The notes under the pieces: generated by a model | Databases searched by the model: none | What the model was told of the DNA's origin: nothing | Seen by the model: only the letters and a program-made list of their open reading frames with translations | Part shown: piece by piece, positions 404-14,663 of the stretch | Layout of the letters: the number at the start of each line of letters is the position of its first letter | Numbering within the stretch: the first letter of the stretch is position 1 | Made by a program: the position numbers and the translations under genes | Assembly: GCA_964035545.1 (NCBI GenBank) | Contig: CAXIUT010000240.1 | Coordinates: 1-14,849 of the forward strand | Direction: 5' to 3' | DNA from: Bugula neritina | Taxonomy: Eukaryota; Animalia; Bryozoa | DNA: 14,849 nucleotides

Positions 404-1342
<939 letters not shown>

Positions 1343-2798: not shown

Positions 2799-3011
2799 AT
2801 GGCTAAAGATAAGCATCACTCATCCAAGAACCAAAACCACAAAAACCACCAAAACGGAATCCAAAAGCCAAAAAGACAGAGATTCCCATCTCTCAAAGGA
2901 GTCAATCAACGCTTCTTAAGAAACAGAAGAAGAGCTCTTCAGAATGATCCCAACATCAAAAGAAACAGAGCACTCCAAAAAAGAGTAGACGCCTATAAAG
3001 CCCAAGCATGA
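2799..3011 (+). CDS. RPL29: 60S ribosomal protein L29 (eL29)
   Basis: MAKDKHHSSKNQNHKNHQNGIQKPKRQRFPSLKGVNQRFLRN matches the eL29 signature MAKSKNHT.HNQ..K.H.NGIKKP...RY.SLKGVD.KFLRN; TGA stop. Confidence 0.95.
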   Translation: MAKDKHHSSKNQNHKNHQNGIQKPKRQRFPSLKGVNQRFLRNRRRALQNDPNIKRNRALQKRVDAYKAQA

Positions 3012-3202
3012 TACATAGTCTATTTAAATCCATCAATCTTCAAATATCAATAATAAAACAACCTCAATCATTTGAACCATCCTCTCACCTGCCATCTCCA
3101 GAACATTTTACTAACCACTCAAAATTTGATAAAATGATCTCATAATGATATCATTGCTTTCTGATCGTATTTGAATAATATTTGATTATTTATATGTTTA
3201 AC

Positions 3203-4156
3203 ATGAACGCAGAACGTTCATCTCTCCGCAAGAAACCACCACCAGAAACATCGATACGCGACCGCTACACCACCCAATACAACAACTACATTGACAGATA
3301 ATTTACCTATAACACTTTGACCCTCATAAAAAAAATAACATAAAATGGATAAAAATAACCATACATGTACGGCATTCCTCTCCAAAAAATAATAATCCAA
3401 ATAGTAAAAACAATGATGATGAACTAGTTATAAACTTTATTCTTTGGCTCAACTCTTCAAGAAATGAAATGGAAAATAAGCGATCCCTGTCTAAACGAAT
3501 ACCTCAACTAAACTACAGATATCACGCCGCATATATAGAAAGATACATAAAGTAAAAAAGTACAATTTTCATTATTACTTATCTCGTATATAGTCAAAAT
3601 CTATCTCAATTAGGACAATAGTGTCATTGATTATAAAATTAGATAAATTGTTAAAAATGGATTCGATAGAATGTACCAGACTTGGGTCAGTAGAGTATCT
3701 AAACATTTTCAATTCAATCCTAAAAATATGAATAGAATTTTCAAAGAATATGATCATCAACATGAATAACATCAGGTTTAAATTGTTGACTATAATTATC
3801 TAGTATCATAGTTTTTCCAGCATGATACCAATCCCTATGAAGATCAAATACTTCCTTTGTATAAATAATAATCTCCAGATAAAAATATATTCAAAGAATC
3901 AGTCAATCACTACAAAAATATATCGACTGCTTTTCAACCTACAAGAAATGGCATTTAAGATCTACCCATGGAAGAAGAATAAGAGATACCTGTAAAAAGT
4001 TAAAGAATTTATAGTTCAAGATTGAAAAGAAATGGATCAGAGATAGGTTTTGTAAGAAAGGAATCGAATAATTAGTTTTTTGGAGGATAAAATTATAAAA
4101 AAGGAATATTTGGACTCGATATTCTCAGAAATTCGTCATCGAGAATTGAAGATTGA
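3203..4156 (+). CDS. Hypothetical protein, 317 aa (TAR=Glu)
   Basis: ATG-to-TGA frame of 318 codons with no internal TGA. It has a globular-looking N-terminal half (MMMNELETLFFG...WKI...LLLISYIVKIYLNED...FNPKNMNRIFKEY) and an acidic, low-complexity tail. No family recognised with confidence. Confidence 0.8.
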
Positions 4157-4263
4157 TTGTAACTTCTTTTATCAATATATTTACTTTACCATATTAATAT
4201 AGTATTTGAAGAATAAATCACATTTTATTTCAAGTTATTAATAAACATAATAATATCTAATCC

Positions 4264-4876
4264 ATGAGCGCTCCAGCATAAGAATAGGCATTGCCCGCAC
4301 CTCCAACCAAACCACCCATCAACGTACCTCCTCTTCTACTCAGAAAAAATAACTCTTCGCAGATATTGTAGCCTTCTTCTCCATCATTAGTACCAAAATA
4401 TCTATCTAGATTCATACTTCTTCATATCTTTAACCCTCCACTTCAGCATCTTTGAAAGCCAACTCGGTCTTAAACTCGATGATTACTCACTCATTATCTT
4501 CCTCCACCTCTCATATACTTTCTTCATACTAGTCCTGCATATATTCTCAAAAGTACTTACTAAATTCACACCTGATAAAGAAAATCCTGTCGCTAAATAC
4601 CTCTCAGAAGAAGTCAGTCTCTCCTTACTAACCATGCTTATCATCAGTGGAATCTATATTAGCGTACACTCTTTTGTTAGATAAATATCTCTGGAAGAAT
4701 TTTGTCATATAGCTCTATGGCTTTGGATAGGAGAGATGTCAAGAGTTTTAGGATCTTTTGTGGGTCAAGCTACAGGAATTGATAGCTTTTCGTATTGGGG
4801 AAAAAGCGTTGAAATAATTCTCATCGCTGGAGGAGTGCTAGAAGTTATTGGATTTGGAGTCTTTGTGCTGTTTTGA
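4264..4876 (+). CDS. Multipass membrane protein, 190 aa, two 20-nt introns
   Basis: Removing 4324-4343 and 4390-4409 gives a continuous frame MSAPAEEEALP...VLEVIGFGVFVLF* with about 5 hydrophobic segments. Confidence 0.8.
4324..4343 (+). other. 20-nt spliceosomal intron
   Basis: gtacctcctcttctactcag; needed to restore the frame. Confidence 0.75.
4390..4409 (+). other. 20-nt spliceosomal intron
   Basis: gtaccaaaatatctatctag; needed to restore the frame. Confidence 0.75.
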
Positions 4877-5170
4877 TTCTTCTACATTTAACCTTTCAAT
4901 TACTGATATTCAACTAATACAAATAGTAGTGTATTGTACTTTTAAAGACTTATTTTAAAATATTAAAGCAACTTCAAACAAGAAAATAAATTTTAAAATA
5001 ATTTTATTTTCTTCATCTTTAATATGTATATTAAGATAATAAAGCGACAAAATTGATTTTATTATTGTATTAAATGAAAGAAACTAAGAATAACAACTTA
5101 TTGATGTCAATTTATCTCTAACAATATTTCTTTATCTAAGCAATCATAATAATAACTAATCTCAACCATA

Positions 5171-5637
5171 ATGTTTAAACATAAGATCATTGTTAGTACT
5201 TCATCTCTTTTTTAGAATAATTACGTCACAGATAAAAAGAAAGAAAGTACTATGGACTTGACAACCTTAAAACTATCTATCATCTGCCAAAATAAAATGA
5301 AGAAATCCTAGATACAGATGAACCAGATATCGAATCTAACTCTATCTATGAACAGTACTCCTTCTCTTAAGTTCCACAAGAGACCCCAGTCTTCTACAAT
5401 CCTTATGATTTCTTTGATTTTGAGAAAGAATAATAACCAGAACCTGAGTCAGAAAGAATAATCTAAATAAATAACCTTTATAAAGCAAAAATGTAAGAAG
5501 AAATTCATAGACCAGAATCATAAAGAAAAGTAAAATTCAATCATGTGATAAAAATGGTTGATTTTGATGATTAAAAAGAAGTTGTTTATCTCGGAAAATA
5601 AAGATAAAAATAGGTAACTTATAATATCCATTTTTGA
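5171..5637 (+). CDS. Acidic protein, 148 aa, paralogue A of a tandem pair; RVxF-like motif RKVKF
   Basis: After removing intron 5196-5215 it reads MFKHKIIVKELRH...YGLDNLKTIYHLP...FSEVPQE...YNPYDFFD...RKVKF...IHF*; colinear with 6336-6826. Confidence 0.85.
5196..5215 (+). other. 20-nt spliceosomal intron
   Basis: gtacttcatctcttttttag; same position (after ATC ATT GTT A) as the intron in the paralogue. Confidence 0.85.
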
Positions 5638-5791
5638 CTAAAATGGCTGTGATATTATGAAACTCTTATCTATATCTAATCATCATCTCGAATATCAATA
5701 AAATAACTCATTTACTAAAAAAACAAAAGAAGAAACGTATTATTAACAAAGTCACTCAAATAATCACTAAATTAAGCAAATCGATGATGTT

Positions 5792-6121
5792 TCAGATCAT
5801 TTTGTTATTAATCATCAATTTGAATATTTTCTATATAAATTTACTGAAATCTATTTCCTTCATCTCAAGATTTATCACCTTATTATACCTCCAACTTTTC
5901 AAAAACAGTACCGACAGAACAGACGCCCTCTCTTTATTTCTTTTGCTATTGTGTTTTTTATCAAATATAAGATTAAAAATTAGATATTAAACCCTCTGAT
6001 TACTTGATTAATTAATCTGGTTTTGTTAATTGATCATAGCATCAGAACCAGACTAACATCTTTCTAAAATATTATTCACAAGGATACACATATAAAGTAT
6101 CTACTCATTTGTACTATTCAT
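5792..6121 (-). CDS. Possible small hypothetical protein, 109 aa
   Basis: ATG-to-TGA frame MNSTNEEILYMCILVNNIL...KLMINNKMI* fills the gap between the paralogues. No motif, and frames of this length can arise by chance when only TGA is a stop. Confidence 0.3.
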
Positions 6122-6335
6122 AAGGATTCAATAGATTTCTCTTATTGTTTGATAAAAAGTTTTATCATATATACATCATGATCTTCTTTCTCTCTATTTC
6201 AATAATTCTATCAATAAAACTGAAGCTAGACGATGATAGCATTGAATAATAACCATAAATAACAAAAAAGATAATTTATAAGTTGAAATAGTATGATAAA
6301 TACTAACTTTTTGGATGTTGGTTTATAATAATTAA

Positions 6336-6826
6336 ATGTTCAAAAGAAAAATCATTGTTAGTACATTTTTTTCTATTTAGAATCCTACAAACATAAACTC
6401 AAACTTAGATAATCCTATGGACTTGATAGATTCGATACAATTTATCGCTTTCCCAACAGAAATGCAGAAGAAGACTAAAAAGTTTAAACCATAGATTCTC
6501 TTTAAAATACTGAAGAGGAATAAAGCTCAAATTAATCAGATTTCTGTTTCTCAGAGATGGATCAAGAGTCACTCAATCTTTACTGTCCATATGACCTTTT
6601 TGATCATGAATTTGAGTAAAACTTTTAAGAGCCACTACCAAATAAAATAAACGAAATAAATACAGCCTATCAAGCTTCTATGGCTTGTTCAAGTTAGCCA
6701 GAAAGATTAGAGAAAAAATCAGTGTGTTTTGAAGAAAACTATTTATTCAAAACATATAAGAAAGAATCTTAGGTGATTTTAATCAAAAACTAGGAAGAAA
6801 TAAAAGAAAAAACACATTTCTTTTGA
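6336..6826 (+). CDS. Acidic protein, 156 aa, paralogue B of a tandem pair; RVxF-like motif KSVCF
   Basis: After removing intron 6361-6380 it reads MFKRKIIVKSYKH...YGLDRFDTIYRFP...FSEMDQE...YCPYDLFD...KKSVCF...THFF*. Confidence 0.85.
6361..6380 (+). other. 20-nt spliceosomal intron
   Basis: gtacatttttttctatttag; position conserved with 5196-5215. Confidence 0.85.
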
Positions 6827-7342
6827 AAAAATAACCATATATATTGATAGTATATACTTTTAATTTATCAGAATTATTTTTACCTATTTAAGTTTTAATA
6901 TTCTTGTTCAGAGATAAAACGAAATCAGTGACGAATATCTCAGTTATAAAAGACTTTAAAAGATAAAAGCTTGATGGAAAGTCAATAAAATCGTCTTTTA
7001 GGAGTTTATTAAAGGTGTTCATCTTCTTATTTTCATTAAAATTGTTTGAACTTTTGGTTCTAAAGTGGCTTACTGAGTCCATGTTATAAGTTATAATTGA
7101 AAACTTCAAAAAATATTCAAAATATAAATGAATATAATATGATCAAAAAATCGTTTTTGATAACACTGGCTTGTGATAAAGCTTTTAAAACCTAAAATAT
7201 GATTTTATATTTTTCTTCAAGGTGTTTTTTTTTCCCAAAAACTTGGAAAAATATCATTAAGATGTAATGGCATCTGTAATCTTCACCATAAGATCGATAA
7301 ACAAACTAAAATGATATGAAAAAATCATAATTAAAGTTCTTT

Positions 7343-8223
7343 TCAGGTCCAATTACACAACCAACTCTTTGGCTTTATCACCCTGTTTTTACTATTCTTC
7401 TCAGCTTCTTTAACAATCTTTAGCAGCAACTGCAAAGCATAGAAGTTAACCTCCTAGTTATTCTCCATCTTAGTAGTGACCATTTGGGATTGCTTCAAAG
7501 TCAACTTTCCATTACTTTTTACTGGTTCCATAAAATGGTAAATATCCATACAAACTATATCATCTCTTTTAATCTATAACTAAGAATGCAAAGATGTTAT
7601 CCTCTTCTCTATTTTCTTCCAGCTCTCTCCCTTCCGGTCAAAGCTACCTATCAACACCAACATCGTCTTCACACCTCGCTCGAACATATCTCCCCGCAAA
7701 AACTTCAAATAATTCATCTCATCCGATGATACCTCCATCATTGAATTTATCACTATCAGACAAACTTTAGCCTTAAAACGGGAATCTAACTAAGAAGTCT
7801 ATCCGATACAATGCCCCAAATTTCCCTCTACATATTCGAGTGCCCGCTTATATCTTGAACTTGGTTTCTCTTAAGTCAGCAACTCAATGCCTTGTACTCC
7901 AAATTTTTGTCCCACTTCTCGCAATTCTTTCATACCTTCTACTTGCCACTTTGCTCCCTTCTTTATTTCCACAATACTTGCTTGTCCCTTAGTATTCGTT
8001 CCCCATCCTTGTGACCCATTTAACGCAAACTGAAGAGTTCTAAATACCAAGATCTTTACTTGAGGAAGTTGGTTTTTCCTACTTTAGGTGGTCCAACTAC
8101 AAGGAAAGTACACTGTGATGGCATATTTTATCCCTGTGCCAATCTAAAATCAAATTAGCGAATATCTTTTCGAAGATCTATGTTATGTGAATAATAAAAT
8201 TGTTCTTGATAATTTTTCTCCAT
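7343..8223 (-). CDS. Divergent P-loop NTPase-fold protein, 286 aa (possibly IFI44-like)
   Basis: Walker A FLVVGPPKVGKT; continuous frame to TGA after removing intron 8040-8059. Family assignment is by eye only. Confidence 0.8.
8040..8059 (-). other. 20-nt spliceosomal intron
   Basis: gtaaagatcttggtatttag just after the P-loop; restores the frame. Confidence 0.8.
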
Positions 8224-8267
8224 CAAATATAAAACTATAAATCCCCGTATAATAGTTAGAAATACTA

Positions 8268-8958
8268 TCATGAAAACCTAGTCTTTATACCTCTAAAAAA
8301 ATCTTTAAAACTATTTGAACAAGATGATCCTCCCTATGCAGGCACATTTAAATGAACTCCACTCTGCTCTTCATTTTTTACCTTAGATAAACAGTCTTTA
8401 ATCAAATATTCTATAGCATCATGGACTCCTTCGCCTGTTTTAGCACTTGTCTAGAAATACGGGATCGATAACTCTTCTGAAAGAGTTTTAGCTAGTTATG
8501 CAGGAACTGAACGTTCAGAAGGCATATCTTTTTTATTACCTATCAATATTTGTCCACAATTTTAATGTGATTTTTACTTGATTTCAGGCACCCAGAATTT
8601 ATCCACCTCTAAATCATCATAAAATTACTATCAAAGCTGACTTTATCAGTCAAATCAAAAAGAACTAATACCCCATCAGCCTTTTGAAAATAATTTTTAG
8701 TCAAAGAAAAAAACTTTTACTGTCCAGCTGTATCCCAAATACAAACGGTTACCTCCTGTCCATTGATTTTAATCACTTTTTTTTATAAAGTGAGACCTAG
8801 AGTCGGAGTATAGAACTGATTAAAAGATGCTACTTTGTAATAATAGTACTCTAACCTTAAATAAAACGACGGATCAGACTTGTCTTCCCTGAATTAGGAT
8901 TGCCTATCACGATTAAATCTATCTTTGCCTTAGCTGGAACCTCCAATTCTTACGACAT
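8268..8958 (-). CDS. Rab-family small GTPase, about 216 aa, two introns, no C-terminal prenylation cysteines
   Basis: G1 GNPNSGKTS, G2 YTPTLG, G3 WDTAGQEKF, G4 GNKKD, G5 ETSAK; introns 8830-8849 and 8609-8628. Confidence 0.93.
8609..8628 (-). other. 20-nt spliceosomal intron
   Basis: gtaattttatgatgatttag; splicing restores SFDKVDKFW. Confidence 0.9.
8830..8849 (-). other. 20-nt spliceosomal intron (alternative in-frame donor at 8855 would give 26 nt)
   Basis: gtactattattacaaagtag joins G1 and G2 in frame. The GTAC donor matches the other introns; a GTTA donor 6 nt upstream is also frame-compatible. Confidence 0.7.
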
Positions 8959-9153
8959 TAATTATAAATTATCAAATTACACGCAGATGATTTTAGTTTT
9001 AAATTAAGTACAAACTAGAAAATAAAATCAAGAATTAATCCTCAAGAAATAGATAAAACAAATCAATATTATCGATCAATAGTAATATTTGATACTTATT
9101 TATTTTATAAATATTGTATTAACCTCTTTATTTCTTTAATATGTTTTGGATGA

Positions 9154-9230
9154 TTGGGGTTGGGGTTGGGGTTGGGGTTGGGGTTGGGGTTGGGGTTGGG
9201 GTTGGGGTTGGGGTTGGGGTTGGGGTTGGG
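9154..9230 (+). repeat. Internal (TTGGGG)n telomeric tract, 77 nt
   Basis: Perfect T2G4 array flanked by unique sequence on both sides. Confidence 0.95.
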
Positions 9231-9349
9231 ATAAACGTTATAGATTGTTTTGTTTTCATTCATAGAAGACAATAATAATAATATAACTCAATAATGCGAT
9301 CTTTCTTTATATTTTTTGTCAATTTCATATAAATAAACAATAATCATCA

Positions 9350-9841
9350 ATGCTAACACAACTAAACTAACTCGAACCCATCCCTCAAGTCCTAAAACAA
9401 AAAGTATTTCTCTTCAACCATCGCCTCTCCCCAAAATTAACCATACACAACAAAAACTCATAAAAAAATAACACCAAATACATAAATTCCTCAGATACCT
9501 CTCTACCTCAAGCAATCATGACAAAAAATACAAATCACTAACCTCTAGACAGACTATATCTGTAGAGAAAAAGAAACAAAATCATCAATACCCTCAAAAA
9601 TAACTCTCTCTTAGATACACCAACACATCATTAATAAAAAATAGCCAGTTCCAGATCTCTAGCATAGCAAAAACCTCTTCATCTCCTAGAATGCTAAAAA
9701 ATACGTAAAACAATCGAACCCATAAGAAAAAGACCAAATATCAACATCAACCTCAAAAGAATAATAAAAAATAGAAAACCAAAAGGAATCTTTTCCTGCA
9801 ATTAGTACAAATAACTTTTACAATAAGTCAGAAAAGGATGA
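9350..9841 (+). CDS. Hypothetical basic protein, 163 aa
   Basis: ATG-to-TGA frame MLTQLNELEPIPQVLKQKVFLF...ELLQEVRKG* ending 65 nt before the convergent TFIIS stop. The region is G-poor, so TGA is rare by chance. Confidence 0.5.
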
Positions 9842-9906
9842 ATATATCAGTATATAAAATAAATAAAAATGATTAATAAAATAAGATAATAGAGAATGAA
9901 TCATTA

Positions 9907-10779
9907 TCAATCTTTCCAAGTTTTATCACAATTATTGCACCTCATAAATCTTGTCATTGGTTCATCAGCAGCCCGAATCTGTCTCATGTCCTCCATAAAA
10001 GCCTTCTTAGCACGACAAAACTTGCAAGTCTCTTTAGCATCTTTGTTGAGTTTCCTCTTCATTTCTTCATATAATCCACTTCTGCTCTTCTCTATTCTTT
10101 CCTTCTGCAACTTGTCCATTTTCTTCACAATATCTTTGTCCAAAAACACTTCAAATTCATCTCGAGAAAGCTCTTTAGGAGTTATTTTCCCTGCTAAAAT
10201 TTTTTACTTAGCCTCTTTTGAATTCGAATTCAGGAATTTGAAGGCAATAGATTAAACTCTACCCTGAATATCTCTTATTAAATGACTAGCTTTTTTGTGT
10301 TATCTGCTTTACTATCTGTGCTAGATCTAAGTAAAGAGTTCTTTAATAATCTGAACCAACTTGATGTTTTTCTCTGCCTCCTTAAAACCATATATAAAAC
10401 CCCTGTATAACATCTTCAAACATTCAGTTTCATCCTCATTCTTTCCAATACATAATTTGTCAGGGAACTAGATGTAGGCAAGTGTTTGTCCTTTCTTTAC
10501 TTTCTTCAAATCAAATTTTTCATCTCTCTTGGCTTTATCTTTCATCGACCTCAGTTTTTTCTTGGCATTCAAACAAGGTCTAAACCAAGACTGCTAAATA
10601 TCATTCTCATCTGCTCTTACTATTTATCTGTGAAAAGAAGATACTGCATCTTCTAACTAAAATACATCCTCATCTCTGATCTTCTTAGCTTTATCAAGTA
10701 TCGACAAAATAACCAAAATCTATTTCCCTTTTTGCTTCCAATTTTTCAAAACCTTTACTTACTCGACCATATTCAGCAT
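9907..10779 (-). CDS. TFIIS: Transcription elongation factor TFIIS-like, 290 aa
   Basis: C-terminal Zn ribbon CKFC...QIRAADEPMTRFMRCNNCDKTWK, preceded by domain II-like KILAGKITPKEL; intronless frame from ATG at 10779 with TAR=Glu. Confidence 0.88.
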
Positions 10780-10991
10780 AAGTCAAATTATTATTGTATT
10801 TATAATAGTCAAATGCTCTCTATTTAAAATCAATAGTTATTTCTATAAGTATCTTTCAACACCATCATCATCAATCATATCAAGAATTAAAATCTATTAC
10901 CACTTGATCATCCTAATATAATCAATAAATATCGATAACTAAATAACTCAAAGATAATTAATATTTAAATTTAGATAATAACTCTATAATC

Positions 10992-11774
10992 ATGTCGTAA
11001 ACTTCCAGCTACAGCTCAGATTAAAGCTACGGATGGATCAGTTGGTTCTGCAACCTAGAAGACCATCAATTCTTTTGCAGAGTTGATTAGTAATACATCA
11101 AAGATAGCTTCAACCTCTATGGACTCAAAAATATGTTCGACCACTACAAGTATCATCCATCTAATCCAGTGACGCACTAGAAATGATACTAAGACCAGAT
11201 CCTCCTTAAGATTAATAACTATAAGACTAAAGGTATCAGCAACAATACTCAGATATCTGTCAATATACCAAGAAGCCACCGATATTTATGGACTTATCCA
11301 TGCTCGTTACATCGTCAGTCCAAGAGGTCTAGCTATAATGAAATAAAAATACCTCAAAGGATCATTTGGAGTCTGCCCACGAGTCCTTTGCGACAGACAA
11401 CCCACTCTACCTATCGGCATGAGTGAATAAATCAGAACATCTAGGGTCAAAATATTTTGTCCTAAATGCCAAGAAGTCTACATTCCCAAAAAGAAATGTC
11501 ATGATATCGATGGTGCCTATTTCGGTTGCTCTTTTCCCAATATTCTGTTATTAGTACATAGAATGATATTCAGATCTACCCATAATTAGTACCTAAAAAT
11601 GGAGAGACACAGTATGTTCCTAAAATATATGGATTTAGAGTCTACGGACGCAAAGGTTCAAAATACTAGAAAAAGTAAGATAAAAAAGAATTAACATATT
11701 ACACACAGTAATAACTTAAAAAAATAAAAACAAGAAACGATCCTAAAGATAAAAACGAAAGATAACTAAAATGA
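10992..11774 (+). CDS. CKB: Casein kinase II regulatory (beta) subunit, 240 aa, three 20-nt introns
   Basis: WISWFC...VDEEYIKDSFNLYGL; YGLIHARYI; FGVCPRVLC; KIFCPKCQEVY; IDGAYFG; YVPKIYGFRV. Confidence 0.97.
11150..11169 (+). other. 20-nt spliceosomal intron
   Basis: gtatcatccatctaatccag; restores HYNDALEMIL. Confidence 0.9.
11233..11252 (+). other. 20-nt spliceosomal intron
   Basis: gtatcagcaacaatactcag; restores LEDERYLSIYQEA. Confidence 0.9.
11554..11573 (+). other. 20-nt spliceosomal intron
   Basis: gtacatagaatgatattcag; restores FPNILLLIYPEL. Confidence 0.9.
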
Positions 11775-11987
11775 TACTATTAATATAAAAAAAAATATTT
11801 TCAATAACTAAAACCATTTGAAAAATATAAATATAAAAGAATAAATATACTTATCTTAATATTGAAAATATTTTGATCAACTTTTATATTAATATTAGTA
11901 ATAGTATCATATAGATATCAATTCAACTGATAAACACTAAATTTCAGAGCCTAACATATTTCAAGTTCTAATCTCTAGATTATAAAA

Positions 11988-13219
11988 ATGTTAGCATTCA
12001 AAAACAAAGAGAAAATAGCCAAAATAAGAATAAAAGTCAACACATGGCACAAAGATTCTCATAGTCTATATGACTATTAATCAAATAAAGTCATTGAAAT
12101 CAAAAAATAATTTAGTCTTACAACCAAATGGGTCAATATCTACAGAAGAAAAAGTAGTAAAAATTGTTTCTAACAAAGTTGTGAAATATAAATGGTAGAT
12201 TCGGAAACTTAAAACAAAGCAAAACTTTCAAATTTTGATTTTATTGCTCATTGCTAACTATAACTGATCAAACCATTCGGAGTCAGGTTATCATTAGTCA
12301 GTCCTTCAGTGTATAAAGACAGCATCAAATAATAAAACAATTAAAAATAAAATACGAATGAATCTATCGATATTTTAGAACAAAAATAATAAAAACCATA
12401 CTTTATCGTCAATAGAAACATGAACCAATATAATCTTAATGCAGGATACTAACTATGTACTTTTTGTATTATTCAGATCCAGGAATGACCCTCAAATTAG
12501 GCAGAATAAACTACATGGTTACCTAATACTACAATGGCACTTCTAAAAAGATCAAACCTTTGTCAAGAAATCATAATTATTTTAACAAAGATGTCTTCAA
12601 ATGCGATCAACTAACTTAAAAAAATAGAAATCAATGCAAAATATGTTTAGATTAAAAATAATAAGAAGAAAACTTCCTCTTCAATCCCTGCAAATGCAAC
12701 GGCTCATGCGGAACAGTACACTTCTAATGCCTAACATAATGGATACAAATCAAAATAAAAAAAGATGTAGTAGGAGGCACCAAACATTACAACCTCACGA
12801 AATTCGAATGCTAAGTCTGCAAAAGTGAACTACCAGGTTACATATAAATCAAAACCATATATGGAGATATAATCAACAAAGAACTAATAACCATCGACCG
12901 ACCCTAAGAAGGAAAATATATCATTTTAGAAGGAGCATGCTAAAAATAAAAAAATATAATGATTATCCAGAACCCTCCTTAAACTGGTATCAAATTAGGT
13001 CGAGGACATGAATGCTAAATAAGAATAGCTGATATTTCAGTATCAAGAAAACACGCGTACATCAAAAGCACTAGAGATCAATTTTTTGTTCATGATAACA
13101 ATTCTAAATTTGGAACTTTAGTTCGACAAGATAAGATGGCATTTTAGTTAAAGAAATAATTTGAGAAGAAATCTATACAAATCGGAAGAAGTATACTTTA
13201 ATTTGCAATAATGAAATGA
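11988..13219 (+). CDS. RING-CH (RINGv, C4HC3) plus FHA domain protein, 403 aa; putative E3 ligase
   Basis: CKICLD...PCKCNGSCGTVHFECLTEWI...CEVCK, then FHA LGRGHECEIRIADISVSRKHA...DNNSKFGTLV; intron 12457-12476. Confidence 0.93.
12457..12476 (+). other. 20-nt spliceosomal intron
   Basis: gtactttttgtattattcag; restores GYELYPGMTLKLGR. Confidence 0.88.
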
Positions 13220-13283
13220 TCAACTACTATTATCATATTACTTTTTACTTATAAAAAACTAATTAAAGTTATACTCAATTATA

Positions 13284-14255
13284 TCATGATTTCAAAATCC
13301 TAATTTTAGGTTTCTTTTTCATAATGATCTCATGTCTTTGCTTTCCTATCATCTAGATAGGTTCAATTATCTTCTAGTTAGTGTATTCTACTATTCCTGA
13401 TCTGTTGGAAATGTCTATCTGCTACCAAGCTCCATAAGAATTACCTTTATGTTGAACTTTCTAAAAAGGAACCTTCTTTTAATGCACTTTGATCTTTACT
13501 TATTATTTTAATTATTCCTGAATACTCCTCCTCGAAGGAGGTTCACATTTTTTACCTTCTATTTTATTCAACTTTTGATTCGCTTACAATTTGTTCTAAG
13601 ATAAATTTCTTTTATTATTTCTATATTTTTTCAACCTTTCTCTCTAAATTTCCATTCTAATCGAAGCTTTACTAAGCAAAGCATCCAATTTTTATAATCT
13701 ATTTGGAGCTAGAAAAGATATTTAATCCTTTAAAGAATGATTCCCTTCATTCTTATTTTCTATTTTCTACTCTTTAGTAATATTTACTACATAGTTATTA
13801 CCAATTTATATTTTACTAACTTTCTTTATCGAATAATTATGAACCATAGGAAGCGGTCTTTTCTCTTAAGAAGTCTTAATTTTCCTATCAATATCCAATG
13901 ATCTAAAAAGCTATTGATCTTTATCACAATATAAACTCTCTTTCGAAAGATCAGTGATCATCTTTTTAACAGGTTTCCTTTTCTGATAAATATACACCCT
14001 TGATCGATTAACAAAAGAATCCACATTGCTCTTATGATTCAACTTCATGTTCTAATCATTAAACGAATAATCAATTTGACTCTGACAGTTTCTTTGCATA
14101 TGTTGATATTATGACTATGACGACTTAGTATGATTAAATTGAGGTCTGCTTCGTGATCTTTACTTTCTATAAGATACTGTTTTAGTTTTTAATGCTTTTT
14201 ATTCTCTTGTTGTTATTGTACTGAATAAATGATCTCGCTATTTTTTGTTCTTCAT
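13284..14255 (-). CDS. Hypothetical Lys-rich protein, 323 aa
   Basis: Uninterrupted ATG-to-TGA frame of 324 codons with TAR=Glu (MKNKKERDHLFST...KKKPKIRILKS*), converging on the RING-CH/FHA gene with a 64-nt gap. Confidence 0.75.
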
Positions 14256-14309
14256 CGAGGATAATAAAATAATTATTCCTCTTATTATAACAAAATTGAT
14301 TATTCTTCA

Positions 14310-14517
<208 letters not shown>

Positions 14518-14663
14518 GGGGTTGGGGTTGGGGTTGGGGTTGGGGTTGGGGTTGGGGTTGGGGTTGGGGTTGGGGTTGGGGTTGGGGTTGGGGGGTTGGG
14601 GTTGGGGTTGGGGTTGGGGTTGGGGTTGGGGTTGGGGTTGGGGTTGGGGGGTTGGGGTTGGGG
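14518..14663 (+). repeat. Internal/subterminal (TTGGGG)n tract, 146 nt, with two G6 variants
   Basis: T2G4 array with G6 runs at 14590-14595 and 14646-14651, followed by 111 nt of unique sequence. Confidence 0.93.

Follow-up and report, generated by a model that had tools for sequence, protein, structure and literature searches.

The 14,849-base window considered here, i.e., the whole stretch of DNA that was analyzed, constitutes the full contig C249 of the Bugula neritina assembly GCA_964035545.1 (216 Mb, 321 contigs), and our concern is the genetic code of its genes, several of which contain numerous in-frame TAA and TAG codons (collectively, TAR). The window is AT-rich, with a G+C content of 26-38%, features telomere-type tracts at both ends, and codes for a polyubiquitin, the ribosomal protein L29e, a Rab GTPase, a TFIIS-like protein, the beta subunit of CK2, and a protein combining RING-CH and FHA domains, along with a pair of tandem paralogues and less characterized frames (Table 1). 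As laid out below, this is almost certainly macronuclear (somatic) DNA of a ciliate contaminating, or living on, the sampled bryozoan, in which UAA and UAG both specify glutamate (Glu) and UGA is the sole terminator, i.e., the peritrich nuclear code of NCBI table 30.

Table 1. Features of the 14,849-base window, in order of position (nt, nucleotides)
Feature	Position	Strand	Codons, stop and structure	Basis
CCCCAA telomere tract, left contig end	6-89	.		regular-expression scan
Polyubiquitin gene, four units	404-1315	-	0 TAA/TAG; stop TGA 404-406	frame reading
Ribosomal protein L29e gene	2799-3011	+	0 TAA/TAG; stop TGA 3009-3011	Pfam PF01779, 3.7e-16
TGA-bounded frame	3149-4156	+	17 TAA, 5 TAG	open reading frame
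Tandem paralogue A	5197-5637	+	TAA 5368-5370 and 5464-5466; stop TGA	pairing with copy B
Tandem paralogue B	6380-6826	+	GAG 6554-6556 and GAA 6653-6655 facing the copy A TAAs; stop TGA	about 38% identity to copy A
Conserved gene	7343-8149	-	5 TAG and 2 TAA sites compared	55% identity over 254 residues to L049
Rab GTPase gene	8268-8958	-	exons 8958-8856, 8832-8629, 8608 to putative end TGA 8270-8268; GT..AG introns 8855-8833 (23 nt), 8628-8609 (20 nt)	Ras profile
Internal GGGGTT tract, 12 units, between Rab and TFIIS-like genes	9156-9227	.		regular-expression scan
TFIIS-like gene, C-terminal zinc ribbon	9907-10782	-	6 TAA, 7 TAG; stop TGA 9909-9907	Pfam PF01096, 4.4e-13
CK2 beta gene	10992-11774	+	15 TAA, 2 TAG; stop TGA 11772-11774; exons 10992-11149, 11170-11232, 11253-11553, 11574-11771; GT..AG introns of 20 nt each, 11150-11169, 11233-11252, 11554-11573	Pfam PF01214 on three exon pieces
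RING-CH/FHA gene	11988-13219	+	29 TAA (including 12812-12814), 1 TAG; stop TGA 13217-13219; one short intron, placed only to within 12453-12524	FHA PF00498, 7.8e-09
TGA-bounded frame, weakly conserved	13284-14306	-	12 TAA, 11 TAG	25% identity over 314 residues to L070, L074
Internal GGGGTT tracts, 14518-14589 and 14592-14645, with a long AAAT-type simple repeat upstream	14518-14645	.		regular-expression scan
GGGGTT telomere tract, right contig end	14775-14846	.		regular-expression scan

Removal of the tiny introns of the Rab and CK2 beta genes leaves both frames unbroken, with many TAA and TAG codons in phase. An earlier note on this DNA had held that such codons occupy invariant Glu positions, and the examples it quoted proved to be placed correctly. 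In the Rab gene, TAA 8719-8717 (minus strand) comes just after WDTAGQ of the G3 motif, while TAG 8453-8451 (minus strand) precedes TSAK of the G5 motif; in CK2 beta, TAG and TAA stand side by side at 11088-11093 in VD..YI, with another TAA at 11344-11346 in MK.KY; and in the RING-CH domain the TAA listed in Table 1 lies within C.VCK. The DTAGQE motif of the Ras-family GTPases has Glu at its last position. We found that the Ras profile runs unbroken over both TAAs of the second Rab exon (C249:8627-8839, profile positions 19-89), and that the stop-free flanks of the G3 site cover the profile as far as position 58 and again from position 60, with exactly one position skipped. As these flanks end at WDTAGQ and resume at 60, the TAA fills a single position, namely that of Glu in the DTAGQE motif. 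The pieces of CK2 beta likewise match profile positions 63-88, 91-117 and 120-160, leaving exactly one position per TAA. A search of solved structures with Rab pieces of 21-29 residues yielded coordinates for the flanks and no single chain common to both sides.

The earlier note had also used the tandem paralogues as an internal control. The pairing itself stands, with TAA 5368 facing GAG 6554 and TAA 5464 facing GAA 6653, but the support that it lends is slight. Over 123 aligned positions, copies A and B are only about 38% identical; their well-aligned blocks hold only those two TAA sites, and the remaining TAR sites face assorted residues.

The host genes of the same assembly provided standard-code orthologues, against which two ciliate alpha-tubulin paralogues (on contigs C87 and C16) and the ciliate eRF1 gene (C314) were compared. 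The alpha-tubulin paralogues contain 6 and 14 in-frame TAR codons, respectively, of which 19 are alignable with the host. All five host genes display Glu at 17 of these 19 sites (15 of 17 for TAA and both TAG sites), the two exceptions are variable positions, and no TAR site faces Gln. When the paralogues are compared with each other, TAR faces GAA or GAG at 11 of the 15 aligned TAR positions and another TAR at 3. The eRF1 gene has 18 TAR codons; against the aligned host eRF1, Glu is found at four of five TAG and four of seven TAA sites; the remaining sites are variable positions, where the host has Pro, Ala, Gln and Arg. When the alpha-tubulins and eRF1 are pooled, the host has Glu at 19 of 24 TAA and 6 of 7 TAG sites, Gln at one site, and Lys at none. 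A further, very divergent beta-tubulin-like gene (L012/L028, contig C255) has about 30 in-frame TAR codons and is about 31% identical to the host beta-tubulin over 251 residues.

We then assembled relatives of the window from public metagenomes by querying the whole library with a single exon piece of CK2 beta and then aligning the matching fragments, which resulted in 80 loci spanning 506 kb. The matches were mostly short fragments, typical of ciliate genes chopped by standard-code gene callers; a cluster look-up traced related CK2 beta fragments to JGI, ENA and Logan. Several of the loci retain the window's gene order, i.e., Rab, TFIIS-like, CK2 beta and RING-CH/FHA. In the translations, both TAA and TAG were rendered as X, so that the reassigned codons could not bias the alignments, and codon pairs were read off from exon-by-exon pairwise local alignments. 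The close CK2 beta relatives have Glu exactly at the TAA positions of the window. Of the 49 window TAA sites with a sense comparator, 33 have Glu as the commonest residue, 7 have Asp, 3 have Gln, 2 have Lys and 4 have another residue; the 9 comparable TAG sites have Glu at 6 and Val, Gln and Ser at one each. Counted by cell, window TAA is matched by 459 Glu, 131 Asp, 31 Lys, 30 Ser and 28 Gln out of about 750 sense cells. Among the individual codons named above, the relatives have Glu in 54 and Asp in 12 of 71 sense cells at 11088 (TAG), Glu in 38 and Asp in 27 of 65 at 11091 (TAA), Glu in 64 and Asp in 13 of 77 at 11344 (TAA), and Glu in all 8, with no Asp, at 12812 (TAA). At the Rab G3 and G5 sites, the sole relative, L079, itself has TAA and TAG at the same positions, and hence offers no sense-codon comparison there. 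Across about 249 residues, the RING-CH/FHA protein is 63% identical to its counterparts in L048 and L074. For the conserved gene at 7343-8149, L049 has Glu at four of the five TAG sites, while the two TAA sites face Asp and Gln. A family search with the longest stop-free piece of the frame at 3149-4156 returned no match.

As an exchange control, we determined the share of cells with TAR opposite each window codon in the 34 of the 80 loci that were classed as Glu-type. This share reaches 31% opposite GAA and 19% opposite GAG, and amounts to 9% and 6% opposite GAT and GAC, 0.9% and 2.4% opposite CAA and CAG, 1.2% and 1.8% opposite AAA and AAG, and 0% (0/759 cells) opposite TAT/TAC. In the closest relatives, TAR exchanges with GAA/GAG 10 to 30 times as frequently as with Gln, Lys or Tyr codons. 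The same set contains a control for discrimination: other ciliate loci have TAR only at Gln columns (e.g., ..CERQNVLP..) and never at Glu columns, and these are ordinary table-6 ciliates. Thus, together with the exchange rates, their presence in the set indicates that the test separates the codes. Among the relatives, TAG occurs many times at Glu columns and never at Gln columns. The claim that UAR means Glu, rather than Gln or a split between Lys and Glu, is therefore borne out at most TAA and TAG sites against both host and relatives; its TAG leg, the weaker one in the earlier note, gains independent backing from the 6 of 7 sites with Glu against the host and 6 of 9 against the relatives. 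As the related loci (L047-L127) show, the public metagenomes hold dozens of contigs from ciliates with TAR at Glu columns, amounting to 34 of the 80 loci, and the public gene calls for such contigs are fragments that begin just after a TAR codon.

That every gene ends in TGA, as the note had stated, is in part a consequence of reading TAR as a sense codon, but it has independent backing: TGA lies at the expected C-terminus of the polyubiquitin, L29e, TFIIS-like, CK2 beta and RING-CH/FHA genes of the window. Among 3252 codons checked, 1488 from six window genes and 1764 from the tubulins and eRF1, there is no internal TGA. The terminal TGA of the RING-CH/FHA and TFIIS-like genes coincides exactly in position with that of most Glu-type relatives (for the TFIIS-like gene, L048, L050 and L079), and that of CK2 beta lies within two codons in most of them. 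The ciliate alpha-tubulin, beta-tubulin and eRF1 genes have TGA at the expected acidic C-termini, and of about 50 Ras-domain matches on the small contigs of the assembly that run through TAA/TAG just 5 contain TGA. Judging from these sequences, UGA is the sole stop, though rare termination at TAR might occur. The last unit of the polyubiquitin reads ...LRLRG directly followed by the TGA (404-420, minus strand), without the second C-terminal Gly of the three internal units.

With respect to codon usage, TAA (56 occurrences) is about as common as GAA (54) in the window genes, with GAG (22) and TAG (12) being rarer. TAR is absent from the polyubiquitin, L29e and beta-tubulin genes and scarce in the main alpha-tubulin gene (window genes and loci L004, L005, L006, L041), an avoidance that looks like it is linked to the level of expression.

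The decoding machinery was recovered in part. Of the tRNAs for the two reassigned codons to which the earlier note had pointed, two tRNA(CUA) genes were found but no tRNA(UUA). One tRNA(CUA) was detected with ARAGORN on the ciliate contig C10, and a second copy, 80% identical, was detected by a similarity search at C256:3983-4047. Each aligns with the Rfam tRNA model over the full length, with scores of 57 and 62 bits where the gathering score is 29. Both share with the host tRNA-Glu/Asp/Gly class a length of 72 nucleotides, a 4-nucleotide variable loop, and a T-arm that reads GGGTTCGATTCCC. The C10 gene has the acceptor stem UCC...GGA, which we take to be a feature of eukaryotic tRNA-Glu. The acceptor end of the C256 copy is A1-U72. 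A run of ARAGORN over the 506 kb of related loci yielded no tRNA. The stop-recognition motifs of the N-domain of the ciliate eRF1 (L041:592-1926, minus strand, C314), which the note had singled out for inspection, are indeed altered relative to the host eRF1 exon: NIKS is replaced by QIKD and GTS by G-S, a shorter loop, whereas YxCxxxF is kept. Changes of this sort are expected for a factor restricted to UGA (PMC10553269). A search of solved structures with a 24-residue piece of this eRF1 gave no match. The tRNA(CUA), carrying Glu, would decode UAG, a tRNA(UUA) not found in the assembly would decode UAA, and the altered eRF1 would no longer recognize UAR.

The provenance of the window is apparent from the bipartite make-up of the assembly. 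On one side are the large contigs, C1 to C9, with intron-rich genes lacking in-frame stops and a tandem ribosomal DNA array; on the other are hundreds of small contigs of low G+C content with the telomere repeats seen in the window. The C4A2/G4T2 tracts, the low G+C content and the many similar small contigs beside the host chromosomes identify the window as ciliate macronuclear DNA. No contig had the look of human DNA. Within the window, a single CCCCAA head is followed by several GGGGTT tracts, all oriented as right ends, and telomere-type tracts are laid out in the same manner on the small contigs C10, C11, C14 and C15. The Rab and TFIIS-like genes are directly adjacent in the metagenome contig L079, which lacks a tract corresponding to 9156-9227; thus, the window is not a random chimera of unrelated minichromosomes. 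The internal GGGGTT tracts may be nested alternative sites of telomere addition, germline-derived reads, or an effect of the assembler.

Several observations weigh against the assignment of Glu to both codons. A residue other than Glu is commonest in the relatives at 16 of the 49 TAA and 3 of the 9 TAG sites, mostly Asp or at variable positions. The D-arm of the tRNA(CUA) is also close to that of the host tRNA-Gln, owing to which its Glu identity, judged from sequence, is only likely. Three pattern scans of the assembly for tRNA(UUA), designed on the premise that its body resembles that of the CUA genes and run on an assembly whose ciliate share is probably incomplete, recovered nothing beyond host tRNAs, chance matches and the two CUA genes themselves, so that the decoder of UAA has to be inferred. 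Finally, the avoidance of TAR in highly expressed genes suggests that these codons may be decoded less efficiently than GAA.

These points bear differently on the other codes that could be envisaged. A split code, with UAA as Lys and UAG as Glu, is known from a ciliate of what is probably the same class, Oligohymenophorea sp. PL0344 (PMC10553269), and would agree with the recovery of tRNA(CUA) genes alone and with Lys being the commonest residue at 2 of the 49 window TAA sites; however, TAA faces Glu at 19 of 24 sites against the host and Lys never, the relatives show 459 Glu to 31 Lys cells, and TAR is found opposite window AAA/AAG in 1.2-1.8% of cells as against 31% opposite GAA, which together render such a code exceedingly improbable. 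We give no better chance to the common ciliate code of table 6, in which both codons specify Gln, even though it is the commonest ciliate variant, is used by several loci of the same metagenome set, and could claim three window TAA sites and one eRF1 site that face Gln. Against it, none of the alpha-tubulin TAR sites face Gln, Gln makes up just 28 of the roughly 750 sense cells opposite window TAA, TAR is opposite window CAA/CAG in just 0.9-2.4% of cells, and the Gln-type loci fall outside the CK2 beta clade of the window. It is also conceivable, but very unlikely, that TAA and TAG mostly mean Glu and yet terminate some genes depending on context. Dual codes involving all three stops are known from Condylostoma and karyorelict ciliates (PMC4967479), and since the gene ends were called assuming a TGA stop, a terminal TAA upstream of the TGA could escape notice where the C-terminus is poorly conserved, as it is in the Rab protein. 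Nevertheless, the CK2 beta, RING-CH/FHA and TFIIS-like frames all reach a TGA at a position common to their relatives, TAR codons are present near gene ends, as in the CK2 beta tail, and the alpha-tubulin, beta-tubulin and eRF1 genes finish with TGA where their C-termini are expected.

If UAR is read as Glu throughout, it remains to be asked which ciliate the DNA belongs to. A small subunit (SSU) ribosomal RNA search along with the universal SSU motif over the assembly recovered only host copies (C6, C135), and an exact look-up of the polyubiquitin and L29e proteins in public assemblies gave no record. A CK2 beta tree was built from 100 columns, a length that makes it weak for deep branches; in it, the window lies inside a clade with 100/99 support comprising 24 rows, 21 of them Glu-type, 3 unclassified and none Gln-type. 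The Glu-type label requires one change on this tree, and all Glu-type loci are on one side of a single branch, with the window nested within, which argues for a single, widespread lineage and against an isolated case. The C4A2 telomere repeat of the window is presumably of the oligohymenophorean type. Its introns of 20-23 nucleotides fit the narrow intron-length pattern in three peritrich genomes (PMC13685798). UAR as Glu is the peritrich code according to Sanchez-Silva et al. 2003, as cited in PMC4967479, and is reported from peritrichs alone (PMC11687900). The economical reading, then, is that the organism is very probably a peritrich. The alternative, that a ciliate outside Peritrichia reassigned UAR to Glu independently and that the environmental contigs stem from an unrecognized widespread lineage, is improbable. 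It can draw on the lack of a ciliate SSU ribosomal RNA in the assembly, on the relatives being metagenome contigs, and on the repeated origin of stop-codon reassignments in ciliates (PMC11687900). The telomere type, the intron lengths, the single branch of the CK2 beta tree and the restriction of reports of this code to peritrichs all speak against it. In a milder version, the source would represent an undescribed, deeply branching peritrich lineage whose weakly expressed genes have come to use TAA as their main codon for Glu.

The code of the window matches NCBI table 30 in all respects tested and is thus already known rather than new. Users of table 30 include Vorticella, Opisthonecta, Carchesium and Campanella. 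As in these, UAA and UAG stand for Glu with UGA as the sole stop, and we see no difference in the code itself. The presence of in-frame TAR at invariant Glu positions of alpha-tubulin is the type of evidence used in the original work. The suppressor-type tRNA genes here also appear to be built on a Glu-like body; what differs is that the tRNA reading UAA was not found in the scans of this assembly. With PL0344 (PMC10553269), the window's source shares UGA as the stop and UAG as Glu, and probably also the class and the reading of UAG by a tRNA(CUA) resembling tRNA-Glu; however, UAA is Glu here and Lys there, and the introns are 20-23 nucleotides here against a median of 57 nucleotides there. 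The table-6 ciliates, such as Tetrahymena, Paramecium and Oxytricha, have likewise reassigned both UAR codons together, retaining UGA as the only stop, and the window telomeres are of the C4A2 type as in Tetrahymena, but the amino acid is Glu here and Gln there, and the Gln-type loci of our data set form a separate group. Mesodinium (table 29) also assigns both UAR codons to one amino acid, in its case Tyr, in contrast to the window, for which TAR was opposite Tyr codons in 0/759 cells.

The window therefore adds one genome-level example of a known code and poses no new question regarding the genetic code; its main value lies in the correct annotation of ciliate contigs. About 300 small contigs of the Bugula neritina assembly are ciliate DNA that needs to be translated with table 30 and flagged as non-host. 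The standard or bacterial code fragments every gene on such contigs, as is seen in the truncated public calls of the related CK2 beta genes. For the biology of the ciliate itself, two details are of some interest, namely that the same code is found on many metagenome contigs, and that TAA is as frequent as GAA and yet absent from the most highly expressed genes.

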